Assembly: GCA_000708835.1 (NCBI GenBank)
Contig: DF237720.1
Location: 1-34,487 of the forward strand
Origin: Klebsormidium nitens
Taxonomy: Eukaryota; Plantae; Klebsormidiophyceae
Direction of reading: 5' to 3'
DNA: 34,487 bases
Part shown: piece after piece, positions 938 to 12,200 of the stretch
Position numbering within the stretch: position 1 is the stretch's first letter
Layout of the letters: each line of letters starts with the position of its first letter
Position numbers and translations under genes: made by a program
The notes under the pieces: model-generated
Told to the model about the DNA's origin: nothing
Databases searched by the model: none
The model's input: only the letters and a program-made list of their open reading frames with translations

Positions 938-3900
938 ATGAAGCTGTGGGGGTTGCTGGCATTGGGTTATCTTCTGATGCTGTGTGCTCAAGCACAGGAC
1001 AATGAGGAGAGATTGCCAGGATGGCAGGGAGAAACGTGAGTTGGCCCATTGCTCTGCTGAATTTCAGAGACACGCTTGTCTCCATTGGCTTCTCCAAATT
1101 AGGGTTCACAAGTCGAGCAGATTCCATAAATGCCCCGAGGCTTTGCTTCTCTTCTACTCGCTGGCACAGTAGGCCATTGCTTGCAATTGGACAACATTCT
1201 TACACTCAGGAGTTGCTAAAAAGCAAACAGAGCCTTCAGCAGCTCAGTAGTTGCTATGAAGTCCTTATCAATTTCGCCCGCCACTACCTGCTCTGGGTTG
1301 CAAAAGTTTTACCTCTGCTAAGACAGGAAAAGCAAGGCTTTCAAGGCTTCTATCTGGAGCTTGGGTTTTGGTGCACATCCATAGACTCTAAAGGAAACCA
1401 GGATTTTGCTTGAAGGCAGCAGTCATTCTTGCTTGCAATTTGTGTAAACCGTGTGCGTTTCCGGAAGAATGGTACATACAGTGCAATCCGCAATTGAGAA
1501 AGGGCCTAAGCTAGAACAGAGTTTTAACAACACTATTTGGGATTGCCTTGAATGTCGTTGTATGCCCACTCTAGTGCCCATCTGATGGGCATTAAGGAAT
1601 ACTGAGGGTACATTGTCAATGGTGGTGCAGACATAGTGTAGCACGCTCGATTGCGGAGAAGAGCCAAGAAAGACGGATGTGGGTGGAGCCGCTTTCTTGG
1701 GAGCCCCGGGCTTCTGTCCTTCACAATTTCTTGGTGAGAAGCTGATTCTCCAACAGCTCCTCCGGTGCTCGCAAGTTCTTCGGTAATTCCCTTCAAAACT
1801 CCAATTTTAGCAGGTCATCAATCAGTCATTGGCCTGCAGATGTGAGTCTAGGGAGAGAGCTTTCTGCTCTTTAACAAGGCCCATGGATAGATTCGCAAGT
1901 TGCACCTGCAGGTCCCAGAACCCAACCGCTTTTCTGTGTCCTAAAGGCAGTGGCACCATGATGCAAATCATGCTCAGGGTCTGACCCGCTGTGCATACAT
2001 GGGAGCTGCCTGCTAAGGTTGAGACAGTCACTGTGTGAAAATTCACTCAAGTGTAATGTAGTTTGGCTAAAAGTTCGAATTGTCAAGGGTTTGCTTCGAG
2101 TATCGGAGAGTGAGTTACACCACAGCGATGGCAAAGCCTGAAATGTCTGGAGCCTCAATGTTCCTTAGCATTGGCAACTGAGCTTGACCCCATCGTTTTG
2201 GTACTTTCAGACGGACGACGAGTGCGACCATCTGGTCGAGGCAGCTAGGCCCAATATGAAAAGGAGTACTGTGGTGGACAGCAAAACGGGGCAGAGCGTG
2301 GACAGCACGTGAGATCCTACTGTTATAATCTCACCCGAGATTCTTTTGTCTTCATCCGATTGTGCAACTGAAGCCGACAGTGTTGCTTGATGGAAGCTTG
2401 CACTCTGAGTGGTTGCATTGAAACATTAGAAAGACGAGCCTTGAAGTTGCCCTCTTACATTGATGTGGGTTTCCCTACGGGCGGACATATTTTGGGACAA
2501 GGGATGCTTGATGCCTGATTAAGGTTCTGCGGCCAGGTTGCAAAGGCAATTGCATCTGAAAAGCACTGCTTTCTGGTCTTTGATGTTTGTCATGGAGTGC
2601 TCCAATGGGGAAAAAGGAGATCTTTGCAGAATGAACGTGTCAGCCTGTCTTTTACTCGAAAATTCTCTTCAGAAGGCTTACCAGCCAACTGATCTCATTG
2701 CACAGTCCTGGTATCGATGACAAATTTTCTCAAGCTCACGGCTTATAGAACCAAATTGTTCGCTCGTGCAGGGTTCGAACGAGTTCGGGGACGTTTTTGA
2801 TGCGGGGTCAAGATGAGATAGTGCGAGCAGTCGAGGAGCGAATCGCCAAAGTGACGTTTATCCCCGTCTGTGAGTTCCTCGACTTGCTCATCCAGAATCT
2901 TACACCACGCCAAGGCTTTGGCATCGTGCCGTATGACGGCGGCTGTGATCGGAATCTTTTGCTAGCCCAAGTCAGTCTTCAGCATCGTAAGAAGAGAGTC
3001 CTTGCGGATCGTGGTCGAGTCACTGTGTCACTTTTACGTACATGAGAACGCTTTCTTGGTTGGAGGGGGGATCCGCCCTTTGTTTGCTTCGCTTAAATTT
3101 CCACGAAGTTAATCATGCAATCCTTCATTGTACATCTCAGAGCGTTCGTTTTGAGTTCTGCACGTTGCAATCTGAGAAGCATGGTTGACAAAAGCCGTCA
3201 GGGAACATGGATATGCGCAGCTTACACGTAAGATGTCCCAGTTGGAAAAGTACTTCCTTTGGCACCGCGCTGGGCTGGGCCGGCGCTCTCTGCAGCTTCA
3301 TGAACTGTCCGCAGCATTTTCTGGTAGAGACAGTCGTCGTCTTTGTTTCAGAACCTCCTTGAAGGCAGAACTTGACCTCCTGTCACTGTTCAGTTGCGCT
3401 CTTTTTGTTCGGCCCCATGCATTTCGTAGTCCCACTCCCAAAGGATCTCATCTGTCCTGGTCACCGAGTCGGTCCGTCACTTTTCCGCAGCCCACGGAGA
3501 GGGCTTCCAAATTCTGCACTACGAGCACGGCCAAAAGTACGAGCCGCACACGGATTGGTTCGACGCGGCATCCGACGTCAACGAGATGCACACCCGCAAC
3601 GGGGGACAGCGTTTGGCCACCATGCTGTTGTATCTGTGAGTTGCGCCACCCCCCCATTTTGGTTTTGACGGAATTTTATCTTTTTCCGCAGCGCATGGGG
3701 AGGGGTTTCAGGTTCTGCTGTACCAGGACGGGCAAAAGTACGACCCGCACTATGACTGGTTCGACAGCGAGTTGCACACGCGCAATGGGGGGCAGCGCAT
3801 CGCAACGGTGCTCATGTACTTGTAAGCGCGAGCGAGCGAAGAGAGGATAGACCTGTAACAGAGACCGCTTTCTTTTGGCCTCTTGCATAAACCGGTTTAT

Positions 3901-4971
3901 TGAGAATGTTTTATCTCATTCTTGTGATATACTTCAGACGGAATCAGCGGCTTTGACGAATGCAGTTCCATCCTGTCGAAGCTGCCCAACATCAATCCGG
4001 CTTCTCGTATGGTTTTATCAATCTAGAGATTGCAACCGGACAAACCCCTCGAGTTGAAAAGCTTCGATCGCTCTCCAATTAACCCTTGTAGACCCGTTTC
4101 GTTTGGCGCACCCGTGACGAGAAAGGAAAAAGCTGCAGATGTCATTCTCCGACCCAGTCTTGTTCTCCCGGTTCCGCGCAAGCAGAATCGCTCATTCACA
4201 CCTCCTCTTTGAACCAGGACTGACGTCGAGGAGGGCGGCGAGACGGTGTTCCCGGCGGCCCACGATAGCATCGATGTGAACAGGCCGGGGTTCGACCAGC
4301 TGTCGGAATGCGGGAGGCGGGGTCCCTCCGTGAAGCCCAAGAAGGGAGACGCGCTCCTTTTCTGGAGCCTCACGCCGGAGGCGAAGCCGGACTCGAGAAG
4401 TCTGCACGGTGGGTCTCCGCTTTGCTTGCGACACTTTCAATATCAGGAAGGATTTTGCCGGAAGTACTTGGCGAACGCGTTCCTCTGTAGATGTGAGGAG
4501 GATAGACTTTGGGATCTGTGGGTCGAAAGGTCAAAGCTCTGTGGACCCGTTCGAGCTGGGGCCGATTGTATGCCAAGGTGGTGACATCTGGCCGGAAAAC
4601 TGCGCTTCTGGCAAGTTCTGAGACGTCGTGTCTACGTCATCTATGACCTTCAGCAGTGATCTCTTCAGAGCAGCGTGCACCATCTTGAAAGTTTAAGAAA
4701 CAATCCTAGCCAACCTGACGTTACAGCTTGCTCGCAGTTCGCCCCTACGCAAAGCAAATACCTAGCTCATGTGGACGCGTCTGCTTGCTATGCACTCATT
4801 GATCCTGAGTGGCCGATTGGAAAGACATGTTCCTTTGGCAGCAATTCTGCATTTATTCAGTTGGTTTTTACCATTTACCTTTTTGTTGCATGTGCAGGTG
4901 GCTGCCCAGTGTTGAAGGGGAGCAAATGGTCGGCTACGAAGTGGCTAAGAGTACATGAATACAGCATTTAG
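938..4971 (+). CDS. P4H: Prolyl 4-hydroxylase (2OG-Fe(II) dioxygenase, plant/algal P4H). Exons 938-1035, 1631-1733, 2211-2308, 2772-2869, [3491-3635 OR 3692-3821], 4218-4408, 4898-4971; 268 or 263 aa
   Basis: The spliced translation reads MKLWGLLALGYLLMLCAQA (signal-peptide-like) ...WVEPLSWEPRASVLHNFLTDDECDHL...STVVDSKTG...VRTSSGTF...KY(E/D)PH(T/Y)DWFD...GGQR.AT.L.YLTDVEEGGETVFP...KPKKGDALLFWS...SLHGGCPVLKGSKWSATKW. The HxD...H iron triad and the 2OG-binding Lys are present. All introns are GT-AG with matching phases. Confidence 0.95.
3491..3635 (+). CDS. P4H alternative exon 5a (145 nt): (S)HGEGFQILHYEHGQKYEPHTDWFDAASDVNEMHTRNGGQRLATMLLY(L)
   Basis: Acceptor ttttccgcag (3481-3490) and donor gtgag (3636). 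It splices in frame to the exons ending at 2869 and starting at 4218. Confidence 0.85.
3692..3821 (+). CDS. P4H alternative exon 5b (130 nt): (S)HGEGFQVLLYQDGQKYDPHYDWFDSELHTRNGGQRIATVLMY(L)
   Basis: Acceptor tttttccgcag (3681-3691) and donor gtaag (3822). Same splice phases as exon 5a. Confidence 0.88.
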
Positions 4972-6259
4972 GTTAGGTTTAGTGCCGAGATTTGACCTTG
5001 CTTCTGGATTACCGATGAAGTTGCAATCACGTCACATGCACGGCTGGTTGGACTCGTACACCCGCCGAAAAAGTGCAGACGGATACTCATGGTACAGGTT
5101 TCTTTCACAAGGCGCAGATGTCGTCCCCAAAAGCATTTCCAGCACGGCACGTTGTGAAGTTGTCGTTCCAGATTGCAGCCAGCCGCTGACAATTATGGTA
5201 CCTTCGAAAGCGAGTCCAATCTCAGCTTACATTTTGTATACGTATACACGGGTGTGCCAGTTTGGCATCCAATCCTACGTAGCTGAGCCGAATGCATTCA
5301 AATATTACCGTCTGTTCGGAGTTCTTTTCCGGCGGCTTGCATGAGAAGGGTTACGTTGAAACGAATAGGGCGATCTCACGAGCAGCTGCATGCCTATGAA
5401 GAGCTTGTACGTCTCTTCAGATCTGCGACTGCAGCATGCTGATGACGGAAATTGCACGCGCACCGATCGGCCCATGTAGAGCTGTTTACAAACATAACGA
5501 CCGCATTTATGCACAAGATCTCTTGATATAAGCATGCTGCGCAAATCTATCATATCTTGATGTTAATTAACTCTTTCGGTCATGTGCTTTTCTTTTCTCC
5601 GGATATCCAGGCTTAGAACTGTTGAACAAGTTAGAACAAGTTGAACAACTGTTCTTGTGTTATGACCAGGCTAGTTAGCTATAGCCATATATGCACTGAG
5701 CTCCCACCCGCCGCGCCTCTTCATTCTTTGTGCAAGATGCAGGCGGCTCACAAGTTGACTGCACCCTCACTGCATGCGAACCGTCAGTAAACGACGTCGA
5801 GCTTAAACCAACATAGCAAGAAGCCTGACCTGTGCCCCACGGAAAGCTCTGATACGTCGGGCATGTGCGCGGTCAGTCCAAAAACTTGAAGCTTGATCTG
5901 GCTGGTACTCGACAGCTCCCATCCTCTAATGTCAAAGCATGTTCGACAATTCAAGTTCTGCAGAACACAGGAAGAGAAGTCCAAGGTTAACCGACACGCG
6001 CCGTCTGATCTTAACAAGTTTTTGTGCCATGAGGTGCCAGCTTGGACTGCCTAAGTACCAGTGAGACGCGGCGCACGTTTCAGTCCAACGTTGCTGCTTC
6101 AGTCTGTCCTTCCGATCGACGGGGGTGCTACAAGAAACCCGCAGCTCGTCAAATGCCGTCAAAGTGCATGCAGAGCAAAGCGTTTGCGAGGACGTCTGAC
6201 GGATGAACGAAGTAAAAGCTCTGGGTCCTTGTGCATGACAGGCAAGAAGCTGCCAAAGC

Positions 6260-9200: not shown

Positions 9201-12200
9201 GAAGAAGGCCGCCCAGGTAAGAAGACAATACCATCTCGCAAAAGCGTGGCATGTCGTATGGGAGTCCTACTAGACGGGTAGTGTGCGTCGAATCGTTTGA
9301 TCGTTTCTTGTTGGTCCAGAATTATCCACCATTTTGGTCTTGCCGGTTTTTGATTTTTCGGATGCACAGTTCCTGCTTCCTTCTTCAAGAAGCAGAAACT
9401 TCTGTTCCTTTTGGCTAGTCCGTTCGTCAAGGGTCACATCAATATCAAGCGAAACCAGACTGAAAATAAATCTGCCTCACGGGTTCCGCAGATGACTGGT
9501 CATTGTAGGATAGAAAGCGGCACTTTTTTGGCACCTGGCACCAGAACGCATTGAATGGCACAAAGGTTCGCAGAGAAGAAGAATGTACTGCATGTCAGCG
9601 AAAAATTGGGCCATCAGCTGCTCTTAGAAACAAAATCCAAAGAGATTCCAGGCCCGAAGCTTTGCTTTGAAACCAATTATCAAAGTTGACAATTACCTGG
9701 TACACGTAGATGACTGGTCAAACTGGTCGCCAGCTTTTACAACCAGTCGCCCCTTTCCACAGACGATCCGCGCCGTTTTCGGCAACCTCCTTTTCGTTCC
9801 CCCCCCGGACGCCCGCAACGCGAGGGAGTTCCTTTCCCCCGATGACCTCAAGCGCAAGATCATCATAAGCGATGCGCCGGGGGGAAACGCCGGGGCCCCT
9901 CGAAACGTCGGACAGCTGGCAAAGCTCCTGATGGCCATCCACGTCAAGTCAAGGAAGGCTCCGGATGACGACAACAGCGGCAAAGGCGACGTCACGATGA
10001 CGTCGGGCGGGGTTCTGCGGTCCGAGAGTGAGGAGCTCTACGGTGGGAAGAAGAAAAAGAACGGATCGAAAGTTGAGGGAGGGGACTTGGCGGAGGGGGC
10101 TTCGACGAGAGAAAAAAGACATTCGGATGGGCGGGTTTCGCGGAAAGAGGGTTCGACGGGCGAGATCGAGACGCTCACTCCCGAAGAGGAGTTCCGGCGG
10201 CTTTCCCCCGGCAACATTCCGCTGGAGGAGGTTCCGTTGGGCGTGGACCCGCGCGAGCGGCTCGCGGCGTACCACGCCGCGTACGGCGGCCGCGGCGCGG
10301 CCGACGAGGAGAGCCTCCGCAAAATCCGGAAGGAGTTGGAAAAGGAGAGAGCGCGGCTGATGCAGGAGTGGAAGCGGCGGGAACGCTTAGCGCGAAAACC
10401 GGCAGCGAAGCCGGTGGTTCCGCCCGTAAGGAAGCTGCTGACGTCAGCGAGCTCGATCGGACGGAGGAGAGAGGCGCAGGGTTCCGGCGAAAAGATCGAA
10501 CTTTTCGGTGGGGAGGCGGAGCTGGTTAAGAAAGGAAAGGGGAAAGAAGCGGAAGAGCGGAAAGAGGAGACAACGGAAGGCGGAAAGATTTACTCAAAAA
10601 CGTGGCCGCAAGAGCAGCGGGTGAAAGGGGGTTCCGCTTTCGCTTTCGTAGCAGCGGAATTTGCACCGGAAGGTCGGACGCCGGAAGTTGCTGGCAAGAA
10701 TGTTTCAACGATGGAGACGGCTGGCGGTTCCCACCAGCCATCTCAGGCGCCGGCTGAAGAGGGCTCCGTTCTTGCACCGGAAACGGCACCGGAAAGCCGG
10801 AAAACGGAAGAGCCCGCTGGCAAGATTTCGGAAATTGAGGAGGCGCCGTGCGGCACGTGGCCGTGCCGCACGCGCGCGCGCGAGGTGGACGTGCCGCGAG
10901 CGGGCGCGCCGCCGCCCGACGCCGAAGAGACGGCAGGGGAGCAGCTGCTGAAAGACATGGAGGAGGACGAGGCAGAAGGGGAGTCCGCGGCGGAACGCGA
11001 GCGCGAGCGGAATCCGCTGGCGATCCCGATCCCGCACGCGGACGAGCCGGCGCGGCCGATCGAAGAAGACGACTTGGCGCGACTGGTTTACATCCCGAGT
11101 CTGCAGAAAGGGTTTCGGCAGTGGAAGGGTTTGGCCATGGTGAACGCGAGCGAGGCCGCGTTCATGCGCGCGATCGCGGAGCGGCCGCGGTTCGTGGTCT
11201 GGTAAGGATTTCCATCAGGTTTCCAGGTTTGGTCAGCGAGAGGAAGTCTGATGACAGAGGAGCGATTGGACATGTTGAATGCTTCAAAGGCATTGTTGTT
11301 GTTATCTGGTCTTCTAGATTGCTCAGAAAGGTCTGTCACGAGTCGTGGTCATCGTGATGCAAAGAATAGCAAGCAAAGCCCGGTAATCACGTTTTCACCC
11401 GCAATCGATCAGACTCGTCGGTTCTTGTCCTTAAGGTGTCTTTTTTTTTTGTTTTTTCCTTTGACTAAGTCTTTGAAGGTCGTCTTACGTGGTGCGAGAA
11501 CACTTGAGCCATGGACTCGAGACGCTGAACACAACATCATGGGTTGTCGCGGTTGAAGCACCGGGCTGGAACGGAATCAGAACAAATTTGGGGCCTCGAC
11601 TTGCACACCTGGAGACTCTCTAAAAGAAGCTCACGAGTAGTGCTTCGTCTGTGCACAGCTGCACTTTTTGTAAGGGACCAGACACACCCTTAAGCTCGTC
11701 ATAAAACTACGTAGTACTGCCGCTGTCTGTCCGATCATTTAGAGACACAAAACCCTGGGCGCGTCTTGGAGCTTCTTTTAGCAGATCTAAAAGCACTTTC
11801 CATGACGGATCAACGGCTCTCGCCGGTCCCCAGGTACACGCGTCGCAATCTGGGCCGCGTGTACCCGTCCGGGCGCCGCCTCGACTCGTCCAACTTCAAC
11901 CCCATGCTCGCGTGGATCCACGGAGTGCAGATGCCGGCTATGAACATCCAGGTAACGTATCTCTCAGACTCCGTTTGAGTTTACGTGCGTACTTCTTTCT
12001 TGAGGAGAACTCTCGACTGGAATTAAGTGATGTGCCGAGAGACTGGGCGCTCGTATCCCCGTGCAAGGTACACTGGGCAGACCGAAAGGCCCTGTGAAGG
12101 AGATTGTGAACTTGGCGCCTGCCAGAGATGGTCCTCTCGCTTGACATAATCTTATAGCTGCTCTTAAAGTGCTCTACCAGAGGCCAAGATAATCTTTGGT

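Follow-up and report, generated by a model that had tools for sequence, protein, structure and literature searches.

In human collagen prolyl 4-hydroxylases, exons that are used one at a time are known from two genes. According to the account of Helaakoski 1994 given in PMC9676403, exons 9 and 10 (9a/9b) of P4HA1 are homologous and mutually exclusive, with exactly one of them entering each mRNA, and the ratio between them shifts with hypoxia (PMC11868403). P4HA2, which encodes collagen prolyl 4-hydroxylase α(II), uses either exon 12a or exon 12b, and its splice variants alter the βII-βIII loop (PMC9676403). Here we analyze a plant-type prolyl 4-hydroxylase (P4H) gene of the streptophyte alga Klebsormidium nitens, which lies on a 34,487-nt stretch of DNA (contig DF237720.1 of assembly GCA_000708835.1, positions 1 to 34,487 of the forward strand; the window). 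The gene occupies positions 938-4972 of the plus strand and was built and translated as a seven-exon mRNA whose fifth exon is one of two adjacent versions, 5a or 5b. We conclude, with a probability of about 0.88, that 5a and 5b are a true mutually exclusive, tandemly duplicated exon pair, such that in every mature mRNA one member of the pair, 5a or 5b, stands between exon 4 and exon 6, and the gene yields two enzymes of 269 and 264 amino acids.

Like the algal gene, P4HA1 has two homologous exons of which each mRNA receives one, and both genes encode a prolyl 4-hydroxylase. The P4HA1 exons, however, alter a hairpin substrate loop and not the segment containing the His-x-Asp (HxD) motif and the βII-βIII loop (PMC9676403), and the regulation by CTCF and DNA methylation reported for P4HA1 is animal-specific. 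P4HA2 shares with the algal gene its superfamily, the either/or use of exons and the βII-βIII loop as their target, the algal exons differing there by five residues. Since the algal pair alters the same loop as P4HA2, it is a convergent case, of independent origin in a distant branch of the family: P4HA2 encodes the multi-domain α-subunit of an animal enzyme that is an α2β2 tetramer, whereas the algal product is a small monomer-type P4H, and in the algal gene, unlike in P4HA2, the HxD ligands and the βI-βII catalytic loop are themselves part of the swapped exon.

For homologous exons of this either/or kind, documentation is good in animals and scant in the plant lineage. For Arabidopsis, pairs of homologous mutually exclusive exons were collected in the Kassiopeia database, at which time genes with such exons were, in PubMed, 'not described at all' for A. 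thaliana (PMC3923563). These pairs, also from the plant lineage, resemble the algal one in that homologous exons of similar length and common frame follow each other in tandem, but they are mostly predictions, whereas both isoforms of the algal pair are found in RNA and a second species has conserved both exons. For maize, the work cited in PMC3591102 is described there as reporting P4H genes with non-canonical splice variants, which are not twin exons. Our search of the literature on mutually exclusive exons together with prolyl 4-hydroxylase, or together with Klebsormidium, found no plant or algal P4H case. An earlier note on this DNA, made from the sequence alone, had likewise known of no such report, which our search bears out for plants and algae, although either/or P4H exons were already known in human P4HA1 and P4HA2 (PMC9676403, PMC11868403). 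What appears to be new here is a plant or algal P4H with mutually exclusive homologous exons; the kind itself is already known. The algal case combines RNA support in at least 16 runs with conservation across species, and is located in the catalytic exon of an enzyme.

Structure and splicing of the exon 5 pair

Exons 5a and 5b show what is expected of a tandem exon duplication, as they are adjacent and homologous, share a common splice phase, have intact AG/GT boundaries and are preceded by the same 10-nt acceptor tract, ttttccgcag. The coordinates, lengths (145 and 130 nt), boundaries and acceptors given in the earlier note were all exactly as described. Both exons encode, in a common frame, a segment running from HGEGFQ through HxD and NGGQR to a Tyr. 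At the protein level they are identical at 31 of 42 aligned whole codons, or at 33 of 44 positions when two split codons, both identical, are included; the homology claimed earlier thus stands, while the count of 32 of 44 that accompanied it has to be corrected by one. Relative to 5b, 5a contains an insertion of five codons. The two exons differ at 26 codons, of which 15 differ synonymously (nonsynonymous divergence, dN, 0.15; synonymous divergence, dS, 1.5), in agreement with the suggestion that many of the differences are silent. A repeat finder returned the halves of 5a and 5b as direct repeats, one pair 80% identical over 84 nt and the other 74% identical over 65 nt, and local alignment revealed no third copy of the exon in the four neighbouring introns (z of 2.1 or less).

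Translation of the possible exon combinations supports the proposal that only one exon or the other gives a full protein. Inclusion of 5a alone yields a complete P4H of 269 amino acids, and inclusion of 5b alone yields one of 264. Because the length of each exon is 3n+1, double inclusion or double skipping shifts the frame and leads to a premature TGA: when both exons are included the stop codon appears 62 nt into 5b, and when neither is included it appears at the junction of exons 4 and 6.

Splice joints were read from the assembled contigs of four sequencing runs, from four studies, that were placed on positions 2700-4500 of the window. Exon depth of 25-540 against intron depth of 0-8 identified all four runs as RNA libraries. 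The joints 2869>3491 and 3635>4218, which connect 5a to exons 4 and 6, and 2869>3692 and 3821>4218, which do the same for 5b, were present in all four runs. Joint depths were 203, 88, 116 and 24 for 5a and, in the same order of runs, 104, 49, 90 and 23 for 5b, corresponding to a 5b share of 34, 36, 44 and 49% of transcripts. The contigs that carry the exons are 203 nt (29+145+29) and 188 nt (29+130+29) in length and together make up a clean bubble whose two branches part at exon 4 and meet again at exon 6. The 5a-5b joint (3635>3692) and the skipping joint (2869>4218) were both absent from the contigs of the four runs, though intron contigs with a depth of 3-8 were kept. The earlier note had asked for the four single-inclusion joints and 3635>3692 to be counted, and its interpretation is supported by the presence of the former and the absence of the latter.

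An index search extended these observations to 15 further RNA runs (six studies in all), which held 0.69 of the sequence words sampled from 3491-3821. As a fraction of approximately 0.71 would be expected if both exons were present and the 56-nt intron between them were absent, this value indicates that the further runs contain both exons without the intervening intron. In three runs of another organism (X34-X36, organism G), 0.19 of the 3491-3821 words were found; these runs probably come from a relative that shares a conserved part of the twin exons.

Two transcript forms could in principle also stem from a pair of nearly identical paralogues, or reflect an error of assembly, instead of arising by splicing of one locus, and the locus of origin of a transcript is not readable from short-read contigs alone. 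We consider this explanation hardly credible, however, given that the RNA contigs show zero mismatches to the window and that the flanking sequences of exon 4 and exon 6 are common to both forms. Furthermore, the depths of the two forms sum approximately to that of flanking exon 4 in three of the runs (306 versus 304, 137 versus 147, and 206 versus 203), and the spacing of the two exons is 56 nt in the window and 57 nt in a contig of a related species that was assembled independently. The claim that a single gene makes two forms of the enzyme by swapping its active-site exon is thus borne out at the level of RNA, while a difference in function between the forms is inferred.

Conservation and content of the exchanged segment

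A search for homologues of exon 6 identified two close relatives, both represented by genomic fragments, while the remoter matches were exon fragments of land plants. The first, L002 (Logan assembly of SRR23617307), has an exon 6 that is 92% identical to that of the window, and the second, L001 (SRR14092360), one that is 90% identical; based on the dS of exon 6, L001 is the outgroup to the window and L002. A dS of approximately 1.5 between 5a and 5b implies that the duplication is older than all three lineages. A profile search for full-length algal isoform proteins recovered none, its results being swamped by P4H3/P4H10-like proteins of land plants.

In L002 both exons are intact, with lengths of 145 and 130 nt, AG/GT kept, and an intron of 57 nt between them. 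Exon 5a differs between the window and L002 at 14 of 141 nt, yet 0 of 47 residues are changed (dN 0, dS 0.80), while the same comparison for 5b gives a dN of 0.056, a dS of 0.39 and a dN/dS of 0.15. Exon 5b is also intact in L001, where 1 of 42 residues is changed relative to the window (dN 0.02, dS 0.76, dN/dS 0.03). The copy at the 5a position of L001 (1075-1205), by contrast, has decayed: it has a 1-nt deletion, the first His of its HxD is replaced by Asn, it contains an in-frame stop codon, and its donor has changed from GT to GA; it is also without the 15-nt insertion found in 5a. Both copies are thus under selection in two lineages and 5a has been abandoned in one. These data agree with the earlier suggestion of purifying selection on both copies (cross-species dN/dS of 0 for 5a and 0.03-0.15 for 5b), and on the further point raised there, that of disabling mutations in relatives, they are divided, as both exons are intact in L002 while the decay of 5a in L001 shows that the pair is not universally kept.

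The loss of a working 5a from L001, by frameshift, replacement of the HxD His and loss of the donor GT, would be readily understood if both mRNAs exist but only one of them encodes a useful enzyme, the other being tolerated splicing noise or an unproductive decoy that lowers output. Against this, both exons give full-length, in-frame products with every catalytic residue kept, and each form makes up one third to two thirds of transcripts in four studies. Purifying selection, with 0 of 47 residues changed in 5a and 1 of 42 in 5b (versus L001) at a dS of approximately 0.8, is likewise at odds with a useless product, and we regard an explanation with one useful enzyme as highly improbable relative to a pair that is used productively in both its forms.

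The first ~50 nt of 5b in L002 (342-395) read like this species' own 5a, encoding ILHYEH and not VLLYQD, which is probably the result of gene conversion between the twins. Because the L002 5b has this 5a-like start, the differences between 5a and 5b that are kept in both the window and L002 are limited to Glu/Asp before Pro-His and Thr/Tyr within His-x-Asp, together with the loop and three residues in the strand that follows.

Among solved structures, the best match of both exons is Chlamydomonas Cr-P4H-1 (2JIG, 2JIJ and 3GZE). The match covers Tyr134-Tyr140 of the βI-βII catalytic loop, His143, Asp145, the stretch to GGQR, and strand βIII. The swapped segment therefore comprises strand βI, the βI-βII catalytic loop, the His-x-Asp iron ligands, the βII-βIII substrate-binding loop and strand βIII, the loops being assigned by sequence alignment to 2JIG/3GZE. 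The stretch that follows His-x-Asp is the βII-βIII loop, one of two loops that close over the peptide substrate, and Tyr140 contacts the proline undergoing hydroxylation (PMC9676403). In 138 of 146 retrieved relatives the distance from HxD to GGxR is 10 residues, with a maximum of 12, and the middle residue of HxD is Tyr or Phe in 135 of the 146. By these counts 5b, with 10 residues and a Tyr, is canonical, and 5a, with 15 residues and a Thr, is an outlier. Even so, the protein sequence of this outlier has stayed unchanged between the window and L002.

Exon 5b is thus of the ancestral type and 5a is derived, having Thr where HxD otherwise has Tyr and five more residues in its βII-βIII loop. 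The gene would accordingly produce a conventional enzyme alongside another whose substrate lid is longer, and the two most likely behave as isoenzymes that differ in peptide-substrate preference or kinetics. Plant-type P4Hs decide which prolines of extensins and arabinogalactan-proteins become hydroxyproline and are then glycosylated. The pair offers a natural experiment on the βII-βIII loop, and on the residue inside His-x-Asp, in P4Hs of this type.

How exclusion could be enforced

The twins are separated by an intron of 56 nt in the window and of 57 nt in L002, while the other introns of the gene are 396-621 nt in length and differ between species by 57 and 233 nt. One contig of run X7 (depth 3.4) reads through 3607-3677, has one extra T, and then continues from 2869/2870 onward, going back 809 nt. 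As reverse transcription across a branch point gives such a joint, we interpret this contig as the lariat of the exon 4-to-5b splice, with the branch at or next to A3678, which would place 5a inside the lariat when exon 4 joins 5b. This single low-depth contig is suggestive of a branch site at or near A3678 (context ttttAtc). Such a site would precede the 5b acceptor by 13 nt and be separated from the 5a donor by ~42 nt.

A distance of ~42 nt from the 5a donor to the 5b branch site would probably leave too little room for a spliceosome to assemble on the short intron. In α-tropomyosin, Smith and Nadal-Ginard reportedly found in 1989 that the branch point of exon 3 lies ~41 nt from the exon 2 donor, too close for the two exons to be spliced together. 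The algal arrangement, with an intron of 56 nt and a candidate branch at ~42 nt, is similar, with the proviso that the algal minimum may differ. Angiosperm introns are said, by Goodall and Filipowicz in 1990, to require a minimum of ~70 nt.

The reading frame most likely provides a second barrier. RNAs with stop codons upstream of later junctions are removed by nonsense-mediated decay, and with exon lengths of 3n+1 the premature TGA produced by double inclusion or double skipping lies upstream of later junctions, so that such transcripts would be expected to be degraded. It is conceivable that exclusion occurs only at this stage, after splicing, with mRNAs containing both exons or neither being made freely and then removed by decay, and with no part played by steric hindrance. 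The positions of the TGA, 62 nt into 5b or at the exon 4/6 junction, are as this explanation requires, and rare species of RNA are dropped from contigs. Nevertheless, unspliced intron contigs at a depth of 3-8 were kept in the assemblies and the 5a-5b joint was not, and the length of the intron between the twins has been held at 56 versus 57 nt where other introns differ by 57-233 nt. Its 56 nt is also below the minimum of approximately 70 nt reported for angiosperms. We therefore judge exclusion by decay alone to be unlikely, though by no means negligible, and favour exclusion in which the short intron itself contributes.

The first ~35 nt of the short intron, including GCGCCACCCCCCC, are conserved in three species, while the remaining introns are unalignable. 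The C-rich element GCGCCACCCCCCC lies just past the 5a donor in the window (3636-3670), L002 (285-320) and L001 (~1204-1225), where it has been kept though 5a has decayed. A G-run at the end of 5a and the C-run of the intron are predicted to pair in a hairpin over the 5a donor, and the same fold is predicted in all three species, its energy being -21.7 kcal/mol (z -1.3) for the window and -30.2 kcal/mol (z -2.7) for L002; the 5b donor gave no comparable fold. By burying the 5a donor, this conserved hairpin may set the ratio of 5a to 5b.

Two other modes of exclusion were considered and rejected. For pairing of a docking site with selector RNA, of the type found in Dscam, 14-3-3ζ and ATE1, the sequence revealed no long-range complement that is conserved; the C-run of the intron matches a G-run of 5b over 9 nt, but this match is not kept in L002, and only the local hairpin at the 5a donor is shared. 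Incompatibility of U2 and U12 splice sites, as in JNK1, does not apply, as both donors are U2-type (gtgagt and gtaagc) and the acceptors are identical.

Several points weigh against a mutually exclusive pair that produces two distinct enzymes, or against the means of exclusion proposed above. Contig assembly discards rare variants, and low-level transcripts that contain both exons or skip both could thus escape. The loss of 5a from L001 means that at least one lineage can do without the second isoform, and 5a-like sequence has replaced the first half of 5b in L002, such that part of the difference between 5a and 5b in the window is unconserved. Both isoforms are known here from RNA, and their existence as two functionally distinct proteins is a prediction made from it. 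A steric block by the short intron is argued by analogy, and the minimum intron length of this genome may be different. Finally, the z score of the hairpin is weak in the window (-1.3), and its role is put forward as a hypothesis because three sequences give almost no covariation power.

Taken together, these elements could form a two-state switch, in which a too-short intron, together with a conserved hairpin over the 5a donor, allows the alga to adjust the proportions of two P4Hs with different substrate lids and so tune which cell-wall glycoproteins are hydroxylated, in parallel with the independently arisen human P4HA2. Such a switch might be one of many in this early-branching streptophyte, counter to the widespread view that mutually exclusive splicing is rare in the plant lineage. 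If so, the alga might serve as a model for the origin and enforcement of such splicing outside animals. We put this broader interpretation forward tentatively and hold it to be possible but doubtful.

Gene model and other observations

Every exon boundary of the gene is AG/GT (Table 1). Exons 5a and 5b each match Pfam PF13640 (2OG-FeII_Oxy_3) at the cut-off, and the distal His and the Lys region, encoded by the two exons downstream of the pair, align with land-plant P4Hs. The product is a Cr-P4H-1-like prolyl 4-hydroxylase of plant/algal type and is predicted to hydroxylate peptidyl proline.

Table 1. Features of the P4H gene, in positions of the window
Feature	Positions	Strand	Description	Basis
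Exon 1	938..1035	+	Start codon and hydrophobic N-terminal signal or anchor; donor gtgagt	Translated gene model
Exon 2	1631..1733	+	Conserved P4H N-terminal motif WVEPLSWEPRA..HNFL	Alignment with land-plant P4Hs
Exon 3	2211..2308	+		Translated gene model, land-plant P4H alignment
Exon 4	2772..2869	+	Constitutive; donor 2869/2870 joins 5a or 5b	All four RNA runs
Exon 5a	3491..3635	+	145 nt; derived version, HTD, 5 extra βII-βIII loop residues; major form, 51-66% of transcripts	
Intron between 5a and 5b	3636..3691	+	56 nt; conserved C-rich element, probable branch site near A3678	
Exon 5b	3692..3821	+	130 nt; canonical version, HYD, 10-residue loop; 34-49% of transcripts	
Exon 6	4218..4408	+	Constitutive; distal iron-binding His; acceptor takes 5a or 5b	
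Exon 7	4898..4972	+	2-oxoglutarate-binding Lys region and stop codon	Land-plant P4H alignment
Candidate hairpin	3601..3654	+	G-run at the end of 5a paired with C-run of the intron, 5a donor buried	Predicted fold

In two land-plant P4H predictions, P0003 (Artemisia annua, 374 amino acids) and P0006 (448 amino acids), part of the catalytic domain occurs twice per protein; these doubled domains may represent merged tandem genes or duplicated exons that are read through. In both relatives, short interstitial telomere-like repeats of the CCCTAAA / CCCTAAAA type occur within the orthologous gene or next to it (L001 2340-2400 and L002 1-30). Elsewhere in the window, positions 10001-11000 form an outlier 1-kb stretch that is strongly purine-rich on the plus strand, with a G+C content of 0.64, a GC skew of +0.25 and an AT skew of +0.31.

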